A stretch of 63,852 nucleotides of DNA, filler included, from Syncephalis fuscata S228 (GCA_025786725.1; 7 parts of 7 records of this genome joined end to end with filler, not necessarily neighbours in it), one strand, 5' to 3'; shown: positions 1-19,744, counted from the first letter of the whole stretch. Numbers and translations: made by a program. Notes: a model not told the origin generated them from the sequence alone.

Positions 1-514
1 CCAATGATCTCATAGCAAATGGTCTTTAGTAACATATAAATAGTTTTATTGCTATTTCACCAATAGTATTAATAAATAGACAGTATAATTATGCTAATTA
101 TACAATTAGTCTATTGGCTTTATTATCAATTGCTTTATTATTTGGCATAGTATTTCCATGACTTATGTTCAACACTGTCGTTTTTAGTAAAAAATGACAT
201 TAATTACTAGATATTGGCTGCAATAATAGATGTTGTTTATTGTGTGCATAATAGTGTGTGCATAATATTTCAATGTGTTGCAAAATAGAAATATTATGTT
301 CAAAAGTAGTACAATGGTTGCACACGACAATGGGATGCTGCCAGTCTTGCATGACGTCTGCAGTGTCCTGAGCGCAATGTTCTTTGTCTCAACGCATGTT
401 ACGTTTTAAACTGTTGTGCTTTCTGCCTTCGTTTTCTTACTTTGTTTTTCGCTTTCGTTTGTGCTTTCGTTTTGTGTTTTGTTCTCAATATCCCTCTTGT
501 CAATAACTTTACAA

Positions 515-6022: not shown

Positions 6023-9000
6023 TTAATTTCGCAATGCATAGTCATAGCGGCCCACAAGTTTTACTAGCTCTTTCCCTGTAAATACCATGGATCGTGAAGC
6101 TTGTTCATCTGTTACGGGCAGCAATAATCGTGCCAGATGTGTAGCCAGTGAACGATCCCGCGTTGGTCTACCTGGTCGGTCGGCCTCGCCCACCGGCGCA
6201 TTGGCCGGTAGAGTACGATCTCTTTGCTCACGAATAGCTCGAGCTCGTTCTTCAATCATCGTACACCACGCCGATTGTCGGTCTCGTGATTCAACGCTAA
6301 ATGAAAGTTTAACGGCTCTTCCTTGTCCCACGGCAACATCTCGCCAATGGCCAAGATCAAGGCGTGGTGCAGTTGCCGCTAATGGTAAATCGTCATCTTC
6401 ATCGCCACTATTCGCTTCCTGATGTGTACGTGATTGTGGCTGAAGTGATTTGCTGCCGTTTAATCCATTAGCTGGTGTTGGCAGTATCGCTTTTGATCCA
6501 GCTTGCTTCTTTAAGTCATAGCCATCTTGATTCGATGTCTGGGGTTGACGAAATACCGCAATTGGTAAATCTTCAAGTGAAAAAAAGGTTGATTCACATC
6601 GAATTCGGAATGCCCAACGCATAAACGACCTTTCAACTGATAGTGTACGCGGCGGAATAGGTGAGTAGCGTGAAGCATTCGGTCCCATCAATTCAAAGGC
6701 AATTACACAACGGCCTACCGAAACACCTGTCAATGTGATACGTGCTTCACGATCTGCGGTAAATTCAACAATATCACTTGATGACCGTAGGCCATTTTCA
6801 GCCACCACACACAATTGCAAGTGTGGATCAGGATACGGCAACTGGATAACAATCTCTGGACTGGGTACCCGTACTGTAACACGTAATGGAAATGTGCCAA
6901 CTGAAATCCATAATCGACCACTAGGATCAGTATCCTCTTCTTTGTCTAATGGTGCGGGTGTAGATGTTAAAACATTGGGTACTAATGACTCAGTGCCATC
7001 ATCTAATCGTATTGGACGGATCCATGTTGCTTCAAATGTATGGCGTAATAATAAATCAGGAATAAATAATGAATGCCCGTCATCTTCACGATGATTTGCA
7101 AATGTGCATTTAAATAGCTGGCAGAAATCATCCAGTCGTGTAGTTGCTGTAGCTGTATCGGTAGTTGATACTGTCGCTATTTTTTGACTAGCCATTAATA
7201 CAGTGTGTAGAAGAGCTATAGCAGCTCGACGACCTAGTCTATAATCTGGATTGGCTGTACGCCATCGATCGGCAATCATAACAATACAACGAGTACGGGC
7301 CTCTGGATCTTCATTTACTGCTTCGGCCGGTCTATGTAGCTCCCATGTTCCATTGGATTCGCCTATATTGTCCGTATTATTAGCATCAAGACGTAAGGTA
7401 GAGCCAGATGCAGTCGGTAATAACATATGACCAGCAACTAGACGTAGTAAATCAGGTAGCGGAATACCACGAGCTGGCAAACGCTCCATAAAAGCCGCAA
7501 ATGCCGGTGTATTTTCTGGCCTAGATATTAATAGACCCACTTTGCGTCTATCCAATCCACGTGTACGCAGTAGAAATCCAGCTACACTAGCAGCATCTCG
7601 TCGGAGCAAATTCTTTTTTATAAGTTGATGTATAGCTCGGTATGGATGTGCGGTAAATTGTTGTACGGCTTTACGGACTTCTGGGTCTAGTAGTTTTGAT
7701 AGATCAGGTGGTGACATTGCTTCTTCCCGCATTAATGCCATGCTTACATCGCCCAATGGAATAATGGCTCGACATTGAAAACGGCAATCTAAATTACACG
7801 CGTCTAATTGCTGGCCTTCAGGAAGAATTGGTTTAACAATTATTAATAAATCAGGGAATAAGAAAAGCATTCTATCTTTAACAGTACGCGATGTAATAAC
7901 TTGTAGAACTGGACCAAAGCGTAATAAACGCCGTTTATGTGTATCGCTCATTTCTTCGCCAGCTGGTCGATGTTGCGGCGATAGCGGACTTTTTAATGGT
8001 TCGTGTAAGCCATCTGGATCTTCAAGATCTATATAATTTGCTGTTGATACGGGCTTTGTCTTTGATACAGATGACGAAACACCTCGTACACTATCCTCGC
8101 TACCACGACGAACATTATTTATTTTGCCAAATTGTGTATTGTTGGTCGGTGCCAATCGTTCAAGTGATCTAGAGACACGTTTACGCGCTATCGCAGCTGG
8201 TTTTAAATGCTTTCTAGTAGGTGAACGACCACGTGAATCAGCTTGTTTGCCGCTTCGATTCGCTTTTGATCGCATTTCTTGTTGCGTATTCAATGCGGTT
8301 CCAACTGACAGGCCTAATTGTTGCACTTTTATTAATAGTAATATTAAATATACCTATTCTATTTATATACTTACCTTCCTTTTTACTATTGCCATTATTA
8401 TTAATGCTAACATTACTTGCATTATTTATAGTATTATTAGCATTATTTTGCAATTTAGATAGTGGCGGTGTAGGAGTCGATGATGCTTTGACCACCTTTT
8501 CAGCACTATTAGCACATGCATTAGTAGGCTGACGAGCTAATGGCCGTTGAGAGGTACGTTCATCAGGCGTTTTTGATCGCGACACCATAGGTGTTATATT
8601 TTGATGCTGTACAGTGGATAGATTTGGTGCTGATGGATTTCGGCTATGATTTAGCCCAGTAGTTGGTACACTAAGCATTGGATTTGCTCGAGTGTTGGCT
8701 GCCTGGGCATATGTTTTTGAACTTTTAGATAGATTACTAAACGATTGGCTGCCATTAACAGAAGTACTGGATGATAAAGCAAATGGTAATCCACGCTGTG
8801 ATAAATACAACTCCTCCTCTGGACTAGCAGAGAAATTGGTTGCAGCAAGTGGCTGTTTTTTAGCTAAAGAATTGCCATCTTGAAGTGGCTGTAGAAATGA
8901 TGAAAAAGATGTACTAGTTAAATCAAGAGGTGGAATATACGCAGGATCTGTGTATGATCGATCAGGTACAGTATTTGATGCTGCCAAGTGACAGATTGGC

Positions 9001-13546: not shown

Positions 13547-14767
13547 ATGTATTCCGGATACGCCATCCTTGCTGCCTGCGCCTTAATGGCCGCCGTTGGA
13601 GTACACGCCGCTCCCGCCGATCCAGCTGCTGCCAAGCAATTTGCTGCATTGCCATTTGCACCAAGTAAATTCTCTCCTGAAGGTTTCCCACTCAATGAAA
13701 AGGGTGACGAGTTTCATTTGATTCAAAAAGATGCCAACCAAGCTCCAGTCTGGATGCCAGAGTCGCAAGTATGGGATCTTAAGAAGAAGGATAGTGAATT
13801 CATGGATGTTACCTTTCAGCCTAATTTGGCTGACAAGGCAGAAGAAACACGTCGTTCCCAGGTTCGCAAAGGCTCCAACCTGGTTGCAGAGCCAGCAGGC
13901 ACACTAACACACACGAAGGAAGCTAAACCCATCGTCGACAGTTGTAATACTACCTTAATGAAATCAGCTTTAGGCAAGCTAGTAACATTCAAAAATCGCT
14001 ACTATCGCTCTCCCACCGGTACAGAATCGGCCAACTGGTTGTTCGGCACTGTCCAAGGTTTGGCAAAAAACGCCAAGGACGGCGTTAAGATTAACGTAAC
14101 CCAATTCAAGCATCGGTTTAACCAACCTTCCGTCATTGCACGAATTGAAGGCGAGGCTGGCCAGGTTGAAACCGTCATTGTTGGCGCGCATCAAGACTCA
14201 ATTAATGGAGACAATCCACTTAACGGGGTTGCGCCCGGTGCTGATGACGATGGCTCCGGCACTGTGTCGATTCTTGAGGCATTCCGCGCCATAGTTGACT
14301 CTGGATTCAAGCCAAAGCGCCCAATTGAATTCCATTGGTATGCTGGTGAGGAGGCAGGTCTACTTGGATCACAAGACGTTGCCGCCAGCTATCAAAGAGC
14401 CGGTCGTAAGGTAGCCGGCATGTTGCAAATGGACATGACCGGCACTCCAGCCAACGGTCGTCCCAACGAAATTGGTATGATTTCCGATAACGTCAATTCG
14501 GACCTTACGCAAACGGTCGAGAAACTTGTCGGTCAGTTTGTACCAGATGTTACAAGCAAGCGATTCCGTTGTGGCTATGGCTGCTCTGACCACGCCTCAT
14601 GGACCAAGGCTGGCTACAAGAGCGCATTCCCATTCGAATCGGCCGGCTTGCATGACAACGACAACATCCACACAATAGAAGACACCATCGAAAAGGTCAG
14701 CTTTGATCATGCCGTTCGATTCAGCAAGATTGCTGTTGGCTTTGCTGTCGAATTATCGCTTCAATAA
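13547..14767 (+). CDS. LAP1: Secreted leucine aminopeptidase, peptidase family M28 (M28E-like), intronless
   Basis: Signal peptide MYSGYAILAACALMAAVGVHA; zinc-ligand motifs GAHQDS, GADDDGSG, AGEEAGLLGS, QMDMTG, CGYGCSDHASW, IHT. Confidence 0.95.
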   Translation: MYSGYAILAACALMAAVGVHAAPADPAAAKQFAALPFAPSKFSPEGFPLNEKGDEFHLIQKDANQAPVWMPESQVWDLKKKDSEFMDVTFQPNLADKAEETRRSQVRKGSNLVAEPAGTLTHTKEAKPIVDSCNTTLMKSALGKLVTFKNRYYRSPTGTESANWLFGTVQGLAKNAKDGVKINVTQFKHRFNQPSVIARIEGEAGQVETVIVGAHQDSINGDNPLNGVAPGADDDGSGTVSILEAFRAIVDSGFKPKRPIEFHWYAGEEAGLLGSQDVAASYQRAGRKVAGMLQMDMTGTPANGRPNEIGMISDNVNSDLTQTVEKLVGQFVPDVTSKRFRCGYGCSDHASWTKAGYKSAFPFESAGLHDNDNIHTIEDTIEKVSFDHAVRFSKIAVGFAVELSLQ

Positions 14768-15084
14768 TCATGTTATTGGCAATCTGCTAATCTAATTATT
14801 AATAATGATGTTACGAATAGTATTAATGAATAAATATAATCAATTTAAATGACAATCAACTACTTATCACCACCATTAGTAGCAATTATCTATTTACTAT
14901 TACTCAATTTCATAATTGTATACAATGCGTGTCGGTTAACATCATTATGAACAATTTATTAGCAATTCATTATCAATGTAATTATAATTTGGTGTGTCAA
15001 TTGACTAAACTTGATAATAATTGCGCAATTGAACTAGACTTTTGTTCTATTGAAGATGAAGCCAGACGGTAAGTTTTATTTATG

Positions 15085-15430
15085 ATCAAAATACTCATTA
15101 TCGTAGATTCATTATGCGGTACACATATATCCTCTATCCATATGTATCATTCCTATTTCATTCCACACTACTATATATCATTCTATGACATACTAGACAC
15201 ATTCTATTGTTTATATGCTCCAATATACTTCATTCGCTCCACTCATTACGTTATACACACTGTAACTTTAACATTATTTTATATACTTTCCCACTGTACA
15301 TTTGTCATTCTATATACTATTCTATAATCGTATAGCCTTCCTGCATCCAAAGCTGGTCTTATTTTTGTTCTAGCTTTATTATTTATAAGTGTCGGCTAAT
15401 TCCGCTCATTGATCATGCCTATATGCTCAA
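15085..15430 (+). repeat. Diverged copy of dispersed repeat family A
   Basis: Shares collinear blocks (aaatactcat, atactagacacattct, actgtaactttaaca, atttttgttctagctttattatttataa, cattgatcatgc) with 42495-42845. Confidence 0.65.
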
Positions 15431-16266
15431 TAACTTTAACATGGCTAATCGTCGTTCAATATTGTATATTCATTCTACTATTTATCGTTTTTTATACAAC
15501 CGTGCACTTTCTATCTAGCTAAGCCAGCGTTAGTGCCATTATAACAATGCTATTTGAACTCATCTCTACATAGCACAGACTATATGCACCACGCTTATTT
15601 GTTTTCCTTTCCTTTCCGTTACTTTACCCATCACACTCTTTCTTTCTATTTCTTATTTACACTTGCAATCTGTATTCTTTATTCATCTTACAATCATAAT
15701 CGTAAGTAGACCTCACTATATGCAAGTCACACTTGAGTATATCTTCCCTTTCTTCGTATCATCATGCTTGCTTTGTTGTTATTGTCCCAATGAACATTAT
15801 TTCATTGGTTGAATACACATTCTGTATGTATGCTAGTCATCTACACTATATGTCTTTCCAATGCTGCCCACACATATCGTTTAATGCACTGCGTTGCTCT
15901 ACCATTTGCTACAGCTATCGGCTAGTATTTATATTCTATAACTATAGATAGATTGCACTACACTACTTTTTATTGTTTTTGTTGTTGTGTAACTACTGAC
16001 TCCTTGCTATGAATATTTATTGCATTGTGTTGATAACAATAGTAGCTATAGTAGTAGTAACTATACTAGTAGATTACATGCATATACTGTGATCATTATC
16101 ATATACCTATTTTTTATACGTATAGTATCCATAGTGATTGTTATTTTTGTGCGCAGTGTCTTATTTTACATTTGATGCAATATCGGGATGACCATATAGC
16201 AATATCTGCAATGTATTTACGTAAATCGAAAATTTTGAATCCGACTTAAAAAACTGCCTTCACTTC

Positions 16267-16385
16267 AACTACGTTCATTGCGCCTAGAAAGCACCGGATC
16301 CCGTCCGATCTCCGAAGTTAAGTTAGGCCGCGCTTCTGTAGTACTGCGGTGGGGGACCACGCGGGAATGAGAAGTAATGTAGTTT
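16267..16385 (+). rRNA. 5S rRNA: 5S ribosomal RNA gene, dispersed (not in an rDNA unit)
   Basis: 119 nt. Helix I AACTACGTT/AATGTAGTT; conserved GAAAGCACCGGATCCCGTCCGATCTCCGAAGTTAAG, AGTACT and GGGGACCACGCGGGAA motifs; helices II-V can be paired by eye. Confidence 0.97.
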
Positions 16386-16391
16386 CAGTAT

Positions 16392-16462
16392 GCGTAGTTG
16401 GTTTAGTGGTATAATTACCGCCTGCCACGCGGTAGACCGGGGTTCGATTCCCCGACTACGCA
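16392..16462 (+). tRNA. tRNA-Gly(GCC), intronless
   Basis: Acceptor stem GCGTAGT/ACTACGC plus discriminator A; D-arm TGGTTTAGTGGTATAAT; anticodon arm ACCGC-CT-GCC-AC-GCGGT; T-arm CGGGGTTCGATTCCCCG. Confidence 0.97.
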
Positions 16463-16466
16463 ATCC

Positions 16467-16476
16467 TTTTGCTTTT
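16467..16476 (+). terminator. Pol III terminator (TTTT-GC-TTTT) after tRNA-Gly
   Basis: First runs of four or more T downstream of the 5S start. Confidence 0.6.
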
Positions 16477-17271
16477 GCTGCGACTGATAGGTCACGTGAT
16501 CTAAATACTGAATAACAAGCGTAAAATATAGAAAGTGAGGCTATATACTAAAGGTAATTGCTAGTGCAAGATATAGAGCAGCCGCGTGTAAAAAAGCGTA
16601 GATATCTGTTTTAAAGTGACAAGGGAACTATCCAGCGCGTATATATTTAGAAATAGAAGTAAAAAGACACATGTTTATTTAATGATACAATGCACTTTAA
16701 GTAGCTTGTATGCTATTAAAATAGCGAAAAGAAATACTAATTGTCTGGGTAATTATATGGCCATTTTAGATAGCCATGTGGCCACAATCAATTGGACTGT
16801 AAATGCTTGTTTATTGTCTACCATCTCCGATTGTATATGAGTTCTAATTGCAGCACTAATTGTAAAGTACTATATATAGTCTTTGTTGTAAAATCGTTTA
16901 TTCATCAACATGACAAACGTTGTGAATGGAGTCTAGATCGGTTGTTATAATGACAATCATCGGTCTAAAAATATATTTACAAGCAAATTCAATGGAACTG
17001 CCAACCAATTAGCACTATTATGCTAATAGTCATAGTTTATGATTGTAAATTATGCTAAATCAACAATAAAAATTATAATTAGGGCAATATGATATAAGCC
17101 GTGCGACAATGCAATACATGTTTAGCACTGTTACAATAATTAGTGATATAGAACTAGTCTTGTTTATTATATATAGAGCATTGTAAATATGTAAATCTGG
17201 AGGTTCACACATTAAGCATTCTTCTTCTAATTGAACCTATCAACACCTTTATCAGCACAATTATTATCAAT

Positions 17272-17424
17272 ATGAAGCTTTTTACTACTACCATTTGCAC
17301 ATTTGCTTTGGCGTTTGTTGCTGGCGCAACTATGATTGCTGCCAGACCATTCTCAATGCATCATGGGCCTAATGAATCAAAAGCAACTGTGACCATAAAA
17401 CAGACTAATAGACCTTGTCATTAA
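17272..17424 (+). CDS. 50-aa small secreted peptide (below ORF-track cutoff)
   Basis: MKLFTTTICTFALAFVAGATMIAA-RPFSMHHGPNESKATVTIKQTNRPCH*; typical signal peptide; TATATA at ~17168 upstream and AATAAA downstream. Confidence 0.7.
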   Translation: MKLFTTTICTFALAFVAGATMIAARPFSMHHGPNESKATVTIKQTNRPCH

Positions 17425-18645
17425 TTTTAAACGCATTTTACATCCAAATTGAAAGATCAGCAGTAATCAAGCGTCCCAGCTTGAGTATACCAAGTATTAG
17501 TGCGATATTCAATTTATCCATTGTATTGTCAATAATATTTTAATTGATTTTATACAACAAATAAACTGGATTTACAATAAACCAGATTACATTTACTATA
17601 TCTATCATCTATACTAGTTAAAGAAAAAAATAAAATGCGTTATTAGTTATTTTTGTTGTATTTATTGCCGTTTGAATAGTATTTTGTTATAAATATTTGG
17701 TTTTAAAATATGACAAAAATGTTGCAATTTTCATAGCGTGCTTATTGCTTGAAATTAAACTGCAACATATCAATTTGCAAATTAATGAATAGCAATGAGT
17801 AAACTGAATTGTTTATAATAATTATAGAATTAGCCGAAAATAGCAGAGCTGATAGCATCACCATTTTCGAGTTAAAATATATACACTAAATGAGATATAG
17901 CCTAAATTATTTGTTTAAACCACGCAAGCAAAAATGTAATGCAGCGACAAATCAAGCGCGTAATACAGTTTGAGCAATAGGCCAAAACTAGCATCCTATT
18001 TGTATGTACAATTTATTAAATTACAAATCAAGCATCGTTAAAGCTACTACTTGATTCGCATTGAAATTAAGGTGTTCTCAAGTTACAGTTCTTTATAGTT
18101 ACTACAAACTTATAGCAAAAAATTATGATTAAATATCTTTACCTTGTGTTAGCAGTTTTAAATAACATAGCTGTAAAGTTAGATATTCAGAATGTTTAAA
18201 TTGCTGCAAATTGCTCTATATCTTTTTTATTTTTTTTCACAAAATTTTATATACTTTGCCACATGGCTATTTGCTAAAAAAAATCGCATTACAAATATGG
18301 CAATGACAACGTGTTAGTGAAACAACGCTGTATTTCAAATTCAGAATCTAAGTTTTTCCGTAATGTTTGTATACCATTTCAGGCCCACTGCCATTTAATT
18401 GTATCTCCGATCTATACTAGATCTAACAAATGACTGTCACGCCCGGCGCATAGCTATGAGCATACTGATTTTTGCGATAACCAGCTTGTTATAAAACGCA
18501 GTGCAAATTTAAGCAATTTCTCGCGTTTTTTACTTTTGAATCTTATCTCCAATAACGTTATCGTCAAAACTACATCATTTTAAGCCTCTTACGAATATCA
18601 TTTTAAAGCAATTCCTTATTTTCTAGACAAGTTAAAATCGTTGCA

Positions 18646-19744
18646 ATGATATTTCACAACACATTTACAACTGCTACGGTTGCTATCGTATTTTTGCTTG
18701 TATCAAAAATCCAGAATAATCCTGATGCACAGCCAATTATAACTCAGAAACAAATATCAACTGAATCGATTGGTATGGAAGGAAGTAAGCTGTGCTGTGT
18801 TGTTTAAAATAACATATTAGCTAAATTAAATCAATAGATGGTGGCTACTTTTTTGGATATTATATGCGTATAGGCGGAATATTTGGAGATAAGAATCTAA
18901 GAGCTACGGGGCCTGTTTACAAATCAAATCGAAATGTTAACCACTATCAAGCAATGGGTGAAATATTTGGTTTAGCCAAAGAAGATAACAAAAAAGTTAA
19001 AATCATATGTGGCCCTAAAGCCCAAACTATCGATTCGATTAAAGACGACGGAGAATGGTACATTTCTGACAAAGAGTTTTTGTTTTATCAGGTATTGTCT
19101 AATCATGAGTTTAACATAGTAGTTAACATAATTTATGATAGAAATGCTCAGAGGAAGGCTCTAAACGGCCAGGAAACAAGCCACTATTACGAAATCTTGG
19201 ATGTAATATTATTAAAACCTACGACACCAACAAAAATCATATTTGCTATTTAGCTGAATTTATTGAACCTAGTGGTTATACGCTTAGTTCACCATTGCTC
19301 AACCAACTCATTACAATGAAACATGGCGCTTTCAATACTGTGTATAAGCAATTTTCACAAAGTATGTGTTCCATAAATTATTGTAACATACTTATAAGTT
19401 TGTGAAATAGGTATCAGGCTTGCAAAAAAGCTAGGATTTCTTTATACAATAGATAAAGAATGTAAGTTTGTAATTATATCACTATATTATAGCTTAAAAA
19501 TTTATTAGGCGTGAGGATACACAATAATTTCGATGTTGCAATGGATTGCTTTAACGATTTAGATCTCGTTAAGCTTTTATCTAAAACAGAGCACGATGAA
19601 AGAATTATGTTTTACAATGCTGGTATTTATGATTTTTTCCGGGGAGTTACTCTCACTACTAAGCTTAGTAAAGAAGATCAAGATAGAATGCACAAAAATT
19701 ATATTGAACCTTTATTGGTGCCTGGAGTGGAGTTTTTAAATTAA
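18646..19744 (+). CDS. Secreted kinase-fold-like (pseudokinase) protein; 4 exons with one apparent frameshift at ~19235
   Basis: Hydrophobic N-terminus MIFHNTFTTATVAIVFLLVS; introns ~18785-18837, 19362-19410, 19462-19508; remote kinase-like order KVKIIC...EFLFYQVL...HICYLAEFIEPSGYTL...YKQFSQ-GIRLAKKLGFLY...VRIHNNFDVAMDCF. Confidence 0.55.

Follow-up and report, generated by a model that had tools for sequence, protein, structure and literature searches.

[quoted passage not shown] Pol III genes are, in the textbook picture, single-gene units, and the locus that raises this question was met in Syncephalis fuscata S228, a mycoparasitic fungus that belongs to Zoopagomycota and whose assembly comprises 29.4 Mb in 371 contigs (GCA_025786725.1). 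The whole stretch of DNA that was analysed, termed the window throughout, has 63,852 nucleotides, filler included. The initial annotation, made from the sequence alone, read the locus as a 5S gene ending in TTT, the hexanucleotide CAGTAT and a same-strand tRNA-Gly(GCC) gene, and cmscan, ARAGORN and the sequence itself reproduce this description exactly (Table 1). The sequence of the 5S gene recurs unchanged in 11 other copies of the genome, and its identity to all 22 exceeds 98%; the gene ends with ...GTAGTTT, the T3 lying at 16383-16385, and carries no Pol III terminator. The tRNA gene possesses the cloverleaf, the A and B boxes and the anticodon, and a T4 run starts 5 nt past its end. It was also claimed that the first run of four or more T is placed only after the tRNA, and that the unit lies among protein genes, not in rDNA. 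Both statements hold, since T≥4 is absent throughout 16267-16462, the earliest such run past the 5S start being 16467-16470, and the unit is located outside rDNA, 1.5 kb downstream of the gene of an M28 aminopeptidase (about 13547-14767), the product of which shows 100% identity to an aminopeptidase recorded for Syncephalis fuscata. A repeat of ~500 bp at 15000-15500, considered as a possible spreading element, was set aside as a genome-wide transposable element that is not specific to 5S loci.

Table 1. Features of the 5S-tRNA locus, in positions of the window.
Feature	Position	Strand	Basis or description
5S upstream flank	16107-16266	+	70% A+T at -50..-11; homologous in 20/22 units, irrespective of the tRNA that follows
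5S rRNA gene	16267-16385	+	Rfam cmscan RF00001 5S_rRNA, 106.2 bits, full model 1-120
Spacer CAGTAT, 6 nt	16386-16391	+	Sequence; unpaired in MFE fold
tRNA-Gly(GCC) gene	16392-16462	+	RF00005, 65.7 bits (cmscan); ARAGORN call Gly, anticodon GCC
Double Pol III terminator TTTTGCTTTT	16467-16476	+	T4 at 16467-70 and T4 at 16473-76

The question whether this pairing is peculiar to one locus can be answered with the whole assembly, in which 22 copies of the 5S gene were found by covariance-model search and, separately, by DNA search. They are dispersed over ~19 contigs with unique flanks; since the assembly contains near-identical (allelic or duplicate) contig pairs, e.g., C80/C317 and C336/C339, the 22 copies correspond to about 13 distinct loci. 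Each of the 22 is followed by a same-strand tRNA gene 6-9 nt downstream (counted from ...GTAGTT), and the spacer is specific to the type of tRNA across the units. The initial annotation had named a one-off juxtaposition, with normal terminators at all other 5S copies, as the case that would speak against its reading, and had proposed that spacing, order and isotype be tabulated genome-wide. The tabulation gives linkage in 22/22 copies with five isotypes and a normal terminator in 0/22, so that the one-off case falls away and, as all the copies share the arrangement, the pairing in the window is not due to chance. When the genome was searched at the DNA level with the tRNAs themselves, all 7 detected copies of Gly-GCC, all 5 of Asp-GTC, all 4 of Ile-AAT and all 3 of Glu-CTC were 5S-linked, as were 3 of the 4 identical copies of Lys-CTT; every detected copy is thus linked for four of the five partners. 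No source of 5S rRNA or of four major tRNA species was detected besides these units; hence both genes of the unit must be functional. The copies are 98-100% identical, full-length and without an A-tail, and their flanks are syntenic across species, which does not correspond to the traits of 5S- or tRNA-derived SINEs or of retroposed copies, such as degeneracy and an A-rich or LINE-derived tail. In the rDNA (contigs C187 and C202), 5.8 kb of spacer is assembled and is devoid of 5S genes.

Where, then, could transcription of such units stop? From the first base of the 5S gene to the last of the tRNA, no run of T≥4 occurs in any of the 22 units; of the 5S genes, 15 end with TTT, 4 with TTC and 3 with TTA; the T-run terminator of its own, a trait of eukaryotic type-1 5S genes, is therefore missing from the S. 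fuscata units. In all of them T4-6 is present at 1-5 nt past the tRNA, and another T-run follows after 10-33 nt, usually in the context TTTTGC, and the free tRNA genes of S. fuscata use the same terminator style (T4-6 followed by GC). A control set was obtained by scanning metagenome contigs for a conserved motif of the 5S 3′ domain, which yielded 84 5S units, 75 of them with enough flank. The scan had been tried as a source of relatives; the only tight pair in it, from a marine contig (L123), is also the only one of the 75 with a close same-strand tRNA and retains a T4 terminator of the 5S gene, and the set was used as a control instead. In all 75 units T≥4 is present at 10-24 nt past the motif, i.e., at the 5S 3′ end. 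As 75/75 controls are terminated vs 0/22 units, it is a real and lineage-specific feature of S. fuscata that all its copies have lost the terminator, and since the controls keep T≥4 and the free tRNA genes use T4-6, the species has ordinary terminators.

The sequence context of the promoters differs between the free and the 5S-linked tRNA genes. Among the 16 distinct upstream flanks of free tRNA genes that were examined, the region -50..-11 contains 76% A+T, and TATA-like or W8 elements, often GGAAYATATA, are present in 16/16. The same region of the 5S-linked tRNAs consists of GC-rich 5S sequence with 44% A+T, and no TATA-like or W8 element was found in the 11 distinct flanks of linked tRNAs. 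The sole free copy of Lys-CTT (L035) has an AT-rich flank and provides a control within one isoacceptor. Nevertheless, the A and B boxes of the linked tRNAs are perfect. In front of the 5S genes the flank has 70% A+T and is presumed to be the landing region of TFIIIB. In the window it contains the palindrome TTTACGTAAA at 16216-16225, and an alignment of the 22 upstream flanks showed this palindrome and the blocks AAATTACGAA and GCAAAAAACTGCC to be conserved in 20/22 units. The flanks reach a column identity of 0.72-0.83 over the 40 nt next to the 5S gene, vs 0.5-0.7 further out. These motifs are absent in the flanks of S. plumigaleata and S. pseudoplumigaleata; as the module of ~640 bp is homologous throughout and the sister species are devoid of the motifs, the three were taken as paralogous similarity and not as proven promoter elements.

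Since the 5S gene leads, we infer that its type-1 (TFIIIA) promoter must drive the unit. A check for TFIIIA had been advised with the initial reading, and a candidate gene is present (L058, contig C317, about 562-564 kb); it has 6 exons and encodes at least nine C2H2 fingers. Its exons were searched one by one against PDB. The best match of the exon with fingers 4-5 (1238-1435) was Xenopus TFIIIA, 1tf6 residues 107-160 (E = 3e-19), the next PDB match reaching only 2e-12, and the exon with fingers 2-3 (1002-1214) matched 1tf6 residues 41-95, collinear with the former. On these collinear matches it is very likely that S. fuscata encodes a TFIIIA orthologue, as a unit driven by the 5S promoter requires.

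The arrangement is not confined to S. fuscata, as the 5S-first order holds in this fungus and in sister species and two of the loci are syntenic. Next to the M28 orthologue of S. pseudoplumigaleata (L054) the order is 5S, CACAGTCA, tRNA-Gly(GCC) and TTTTGC...TTTTGC, and at the M28 locus of S. plumigaleata (L053) it is 5S(GTAGTTTT), CAACAT, tRNA-Gly(GCC) and TTTTTGCTTTTGC. The latter 5S gene ends in T4 (GTAGTTTT), which may be a leaky terminator that stops part of the transcripts there. Adjoining EB1, S. plumigaleata (L176) carries 5S(GTAGTTT), CAACAA, tRNA-Ile(AAT) and TTTTTTGC, in synteny with the EB1 locus of S. fuscata (L014). The Syncephalis species with syntenic units diverge by about 20% in the neighbouring proteins. 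A fourth sample, run X19 (organism E), gave a contig of 210 nt that is 94% alike and reads 5S, AACAAAA, tRNA-Gly and TTTTTGCTTTTT. The 5S sequences are uniform within a species and differ between species, and in an alignment of those of three species, inspected by eye, changes were seen on both strands of helices, e.g., CTTCT/AGAAG vs CCCC/GGG. Such paired changes between species, together with identity within a species, would be expected of functional 5S genes that evolve in concert. At the loci examined in Thamnocephalis (L055, L177) and Piptocephalis (L185) no 5S-tRNA unit was found: a free tRNA-Ile(AAT) without 5S lies near EB1 in Thamnocephalis (L177) and in a metagenomic relative (L178), and the Piptocephalis locus has neither a 5S nor a tRNA gene. 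With a free tRNA-Ile in one genus and neither gene at the locus of the other, the comparison of sequences implies that the fusion may be restricted to Syncephalis or its near kin.

Public RNA data were consulted as assembled Logan contigs of the runs, not as reads. Run X1 (organism A) is RNA, because its contigs skip GT..AG introns; the M28 gene is covered to a depth of about 5000, intergenic DNA to about 20. A contig of this run, 16357-16799 (depth 41), spans the junction between the 5S and the tRNA and continues for 320 nt past both T4 runs, and GT..AG joints from 15701 to 16770, 16880, 17152 and 18609 place the unit inside an intron of a plus-strand Pol II transcript. As the bridging contig passes the terminators and sits in a Pol II intron, it is not diagnostic of a Pol III precursor and may represent pre-mRNA or DNA carry-over; none of the RNA contigs represents a Pol III precursor with defined ends. 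Only a single 5S sequence, without variant letters, appears in the RNA contigs of X1. Run X2, made from soil RNA, contains 52-nt contigs that consist of 5S positions 16355-16384 or 16355-16385 and 21-22 non-templated A. These ends indicate that processed 5S RNA stops at ...GUAGUU(U), without bases of the spacer.

How, then, could both RNAs be produced? It is quite likely that the unit is a 5S-led dicistronic Pol III gene which is processed by RNase P and occurs at about 13 dispersed loci. The dicistronic reading was put forward in the initial annotation, and all its predictions that can be tested on sequence (terminators, flanks, synteny, TFIIIA candidate and two-domain fold) were borne out. 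According to this model, TFIIIA would bind the internal control region of the 5S gene and bring TFIIIC, and then TFIIIB, to the AT-rich flank upstream. Pol III would initiate at the 5S 5′ end and, meeting no T≥4, would read through the spacer of 6-9 nt and the tRNA, to halt at the T4-6 run 1-5 nt past the tRNA, the second T-run serving as a back-up. From this we infer a single transcript, the 5S moiety of which would be freed by RNase P cleavage at the tRNA 5′ end with a 3′ trailer of 6-9 nt. In the window the spacer CAGTAT would double as the 5S 3′ trailer and the 5′ leader of the pre-tRNA. The minimum free energy (MFE) fold of the 205-nt RNA (-72.1 kcal/mol, z = -2.1) comprises two separate domains, the 5S three-way junction and the cloverleaf, with a linker of 6 unpaired nt between them, which makes this modelled RNA a plausible RNase P substrate. 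An exonuclease of the Rex1 type would then trim the 5S trailer in the 3′–5′ direction to ...GUAGUU(U), and the tRNA 3′ end would be matured, with CCA added, in the usual way. In yeast, the natural trailer of 5S RNA, of about the same length, is removed by Rex1.

Three other explanations have to be weighed against the dicistronic gene, and the one that we consider unlikely, yet the least so of the three, regards the partners as tightly packed independent genes. The 5S transcript would then end at T2-3, by non-canonical termination or by trimming of a short read-through, and the tRNA would be self-started, TFIIIC on its A and B boxes putting TFIIIB on the 3′ half of the 5S gene. Initiation within this half is conceivable, as the A and B boxes are perfect and the internal promoters of the tRNAs are canonical (65.7 bits); however, the would-be TFIIIB site contains 44% A+T and no TATA-like element, vs 16/16 of the free flanks, and a factor bound there is expected to clash sterically with TFIIIA and TFIIIC on the internal control region of the 5S gene. 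In addition, only the upstream promoter is active in vivo in the known tandem tRNA-tRNA and tRNA-5S genes (PMC2566860). As for termination, TTT stands at the 5S end of 15/22 units and T4 in one copy of S. plumigaleata, 5S RNA 3′ ends at UU/UUU would also result from termination at this site, and the RNA contigs give no proof of a dicistronic Pol III transcript. Yet seven units end with TTC or TTA and lack any T3, all 75 control 5S genes possess T≥4, and the free tRNA genes of S. fuscata itself use T4-6.

Less probable still is that the arrangement is a by-product of spread, in which a module of ~640 bp of upstream sequence with the 5S gene was copied or recombined in front of tRNAs, by mobile-element-like copying or ectopic recombination, and has no transcriptional meaning. 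The homology pattern does support module copying as the origin of the units, judging from their alignment: the ~640 bp upstream are homologous among units with different tRNAs and are found at 5S loci only, the homology from unit to unit does not go beyond the 3′ end of the 5S gene, about 1 kb upstream is 94-98% identical among L005 (Ile), L015 (Asp) and L019 (Lys), and fragments of transposable elements lie further upstream. Spread accounts, however, for the origin and not for the loss of the terminator in every copy, nor for four tRNAs without a free copy; the tRNAs and 5S genes are intact and identical among copies, two loci are syntenic across species, and an unsystematic look revealed neither poly-A tails nor obvious direct repeats flanking the units. 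We give the least credence to an assembly artefact, or to a functional 5S family elsewhere (an unassembled array or the rDNA spacer) beside which these copies would be minor. The 371 contigs do include allelic or duplicate pairs, 22 copies are few for fungal 5S, and the assembly leaves the rDNA repeat open, so that normally terminated 5S genes could be hidden in the unassembled part. Against this, the unit is found in three assemblies made independently from other species, as well as on ~19 contigs of S. fuscata whose flanks are unique, the RNA contigs of X1 carry only this 5S sequence, and the 5.8 kb of rDNA spacer that is assembled has no 5S.

If the units are 5S-led dicistronic genes, the consequences reach beyond the single locus. 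A TFIIIA-dependent type-1 promoter could drive a second gene, and the maturation of the 5S 3′ end could pass to the tRNA-processing machinery. The whole 5S supply of the assembled genome would be made 1:1 with tRNA from these units, which would also provide tRNA-Gly(GCC), Asp(GTC), Ile(AAU), Glu(CUC) and most of Lys(CUU), and in this way the supply of 5S would be hard-wired to the most used tRNAs (Gly, Asp, Glu, Lys, Ile). The broader proposition is held with somewhat less confidence than the dicistronic gene itself, although we regard it as probable: the whole 5S family would have been turned into 5S-led Pol III operons, with the TFIIIA promoter as the sole driver of five major tRNAs, a 5S 3′ end that depends on RNase P and a fixed 1:1 stoichiometry. 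These would be the first natural Pol III polycistrons with a leader other than tRNA, independent of those of Yarrowia and Trichomonascus, yet converging on almost the same partners.

The closest known systems are found in yeasts. Yarrowia lipolytica possesses 48 tRNA-5S fusions with a spacing of 4-7 nt, which are driven by the tRNA promoter without TFIIIA, and the partners are Gly-GCC, Asp-GTC, Glu-CTC, Gln, Thr and Lys-CTT-Glu-CTC (PMC2566860). In Trichomonascus vanleenenianus all 5S genes are fused to tRNAs at 1-3 bp, and TFIIIA is kept (PMC13130702). As in both yeasts, the 5S and tRNA genes of Syncephalis lie on the same strand a few nucleotides apart, with no internal T≥4 and with a distal terminator, and the 5S genes are dispersed outside rDNA. 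As in Trichomonascus, all the (assembled) 5S genes are linked and a (candidate) TFIIIA is retained; as in Yarrowia, the partners include Gly-GCC, Asp-GTC, Glu-CTC and Lys-CTT, to which Syncephalis adds Ile-AAT. The order, however, is opposite: the units of the yeasts are led by tRNA and driven by its A and B boxes, TFIIIA being dispensable, whereas in Syncephalis the 5S gene leads. Consequently, the tRNA of Syncephalis would depend on the 5S promoter, the reverse of the dependence in Yarrowia and Trichomonascus, and where the 5S of the yeasts would be released by cleavage at the 3′ end of the tRNA, RNase P and not RNase Z would separate the two RNAs in Syncephalis. Because of the reversed order, the units fall outside the strict definition of the Yarrowia type (tRNA leader, TFIIIA-independent), and since the lineages differ (Zoopagomycota vs Saccharomycotina), the Syncephalis fusion is of independent origin. 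The nearly identical set of partners in Yarrowia, despite the opposite order and the other lineage, suggests that there is a selective reason for the pairing; possible reasons are that the partner tRNAs are intron-less, have high copy numbers and serve major codons. In all dicistronic Pol III genes known to Acker et al. (2008) the leader was a tRNA (PMC2566860). According to the initial annotation the order 5S then tRNA is not known to have been described in fungi, and in agreement with it no natural 5S-first case was found in full-text searches of an open-access library.

Other tandem genes share single features with the Syncephalis units. Tandem tRNA-tRNA genes (Ser-Met of S. pombe, Arg-Asp of S. 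cerevisiae) and the tRNA-snoRNA genes of plants likewise have no terminator between the genes, and their products are separated by RNase P and RNase Z; they differ in that a tRNA with a type-2 promoter leads in every case and 5S genes take no part. The same order of 5S then tRNA, in one transcript, is met in bacterial rrn operons with a distal tRNA (E. coli rrnC and rrnH, 5S-tRNA-Asp), where RNase P helps to set the ends and the output of tRNA is coupled to that of rRNA (PMC5179076). These operons are transcribed by bacterial RNA polymerase as a 16S-23S-5S precursor and the arrangement is not homologous, whereas that of Syncephalis belongs to nuclear Pol III. The design with 5S in front has also been built artificially: engineered 5S rRNA-tRNA-sgRNA cassettes express Cas9 guides in Rhodotorula toruloides and Humicola insolens, and in the view of their designers the guide is set free by RNase P and RNase Z (PMC8858515, PMC8542335). 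Like the Syncephalis units, the cassettes fuse a terminator-less 5S to a tRNA, and by analogy they lend indirect support to the view that a 5S-first design is workable in fungi. The cassettes are artificial and the Syncephalis genes are native, and the latter would thus represent a natural template for the 5S-tRNA guide-RNA cassettes that are used empirically in fungal CRISPR.

The 5S–tRNA units of S. fuscata that carry different tRNAs are homologous upstream of the 5S gene, and this homology stops at the 5S 3′ end. The upstream module shared by these units (Table) was found, within the S. fuscata genome, at 5S loci only. In three of the units, L005 (tRNA-Ile), L015 (tRNA-Asp) and L019 (tRNA-Lys), the upstream ~1 kb is 94–98% identical despite the unlike tRNAs, which implies that recombination or conversion took place recently, its breakpoint lying inside the 5S gene or directly after it. 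Further upstream of the unit in the window lies a genome-wide repeat, whose copies frequently occur as inverted pairs with 3–6 kb between the partners (e.g., C157:29462–29960 on the + strand with 35151–35649 on the − strand), and which probably represents a transposon bounded by long terminal inverted repeats. Pieces of this repeat are also present upstream of several further 5S units.

Two short motifs flank the unit. The perfect palindrome TTTACGTAAA (window 16216–16225, ~45 nt 5′ of the 5S gene), which is similar to a bZIP-type site, is present in 20 of the 22 S. fuscata units. The Gly units are followed, at a distance of ~25–35 nt, by GGTCACGTGAYC, a CACGTG motif (window 16489–16498). Some free tRNA genes (L032, L044) also have CACGTG nearby. 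At the loci of the sister species, S. plumigaleata and S. pseudoplumigaleata, the palindrome is not kept, and neither is CACGTG, except for one occurrence ~55 nt downstream in S. pseudoplumigaleata.

The unit is also intronic: an alternatively spliced + strand Pol II transcript (window 15701–19300) runs across it, since the assembled RNA contigs of public run X1 contain GT..AG joints from window 15701 to 16770, 16880, 17152 and 18609, as well as introns at 18785–18837 and 19090–19139.

The flanks of the 5S loci recur in contig pairs (C80/C317, C336/C339, C100/C235, C120/C223, C2/C58, C4/C113, C142/C350 and C68/C79) that are 96–100% identical over the alignable stretches, C4/C113 and C68/C79 aligning over one flank only. 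The assembly thus contains allelic or duplicated contigs, and copy counts exceed the true number of loci. In the lower-scoring tRNA-Gly copy L022, single nucleotides are missing at two places in the 5S gene and at one in the tRNA D-arm. Its partner L016 is intact. L022 is either a decaying copy or the product of sequencing errors in a short contig. No 5S gene was found on the two rDNA contigs, on which the repeat unit is unclosed in the assembly; their spacer contains internal repeats with 24–48-bp offsets at ~7800–8240. In the candidate TFIIIA gene, two exons gave collinear matches to Xenopus TFIIIA, namely to fingers 2–3 and fingers 4–5.

Table. Location of loci and sequence features considered in the analysis
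Feature	Location	Strand	Source	Description
Repeat, ~500 bp	window 15000–15500		S. fuscata	Genome-wide; dozens of copies, 75–83% identity
5S upstream module, ~640 bp	window 15630–16266 and matching stretch in L001–L022		S. fuscata	Homologous across units with unlike tRNAs
5S–tRNA-Gly copy L022	G000:C142:7950–8142		S. fuscata	88.9 bits vs 106
Candidate TFIIIA gene	G000:C317:562000–563900 (L058 506–2369)	+	S. fuscata	At least 9 C2H2 fingers, ~6 short exons
rDNA contigs, two, near-identical	G000:C187, G000:C202 (L181–L184)		S. fuscata	18S-5.8S-28S and 4.6 kb spacer
tRNA-Ile(AAT) close to EB1 gene	L177 2028–2101		Thamnocephalis sphaerospora	Without upstream 5S
tRNA-Ile(AAT) close to EB1 gene	L178 299–372		Metagenome	Without upstream 5S
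5S, then tRNA-Arg(ACG), then tRNA-Ser(CGA)	Ga0163179_10101467 (L123) 1–324		Marine metagenome, unrelated eukaryote

Because the tRNA-Ile(AAT) genes near EB1 in T. sphaerospora and in metagenome locus L178 have no 5S gene upstream, it is suggested that the 5S–tRNA fusion is younger than the Syncephalis/Thamnocephalis split, or at minimum non-universal in Zoopagales. A different arrangement is seen in the marine metagenome contig, where the 5S gene ends in a T4 terminator and tRNA-Arg(ACG) starts ~13 nt later, followed by tRNA-Ser(CGA); unlike the Syncephalis units, these closely packed Pol III genes include a 5S gene that has kept its own terminator.
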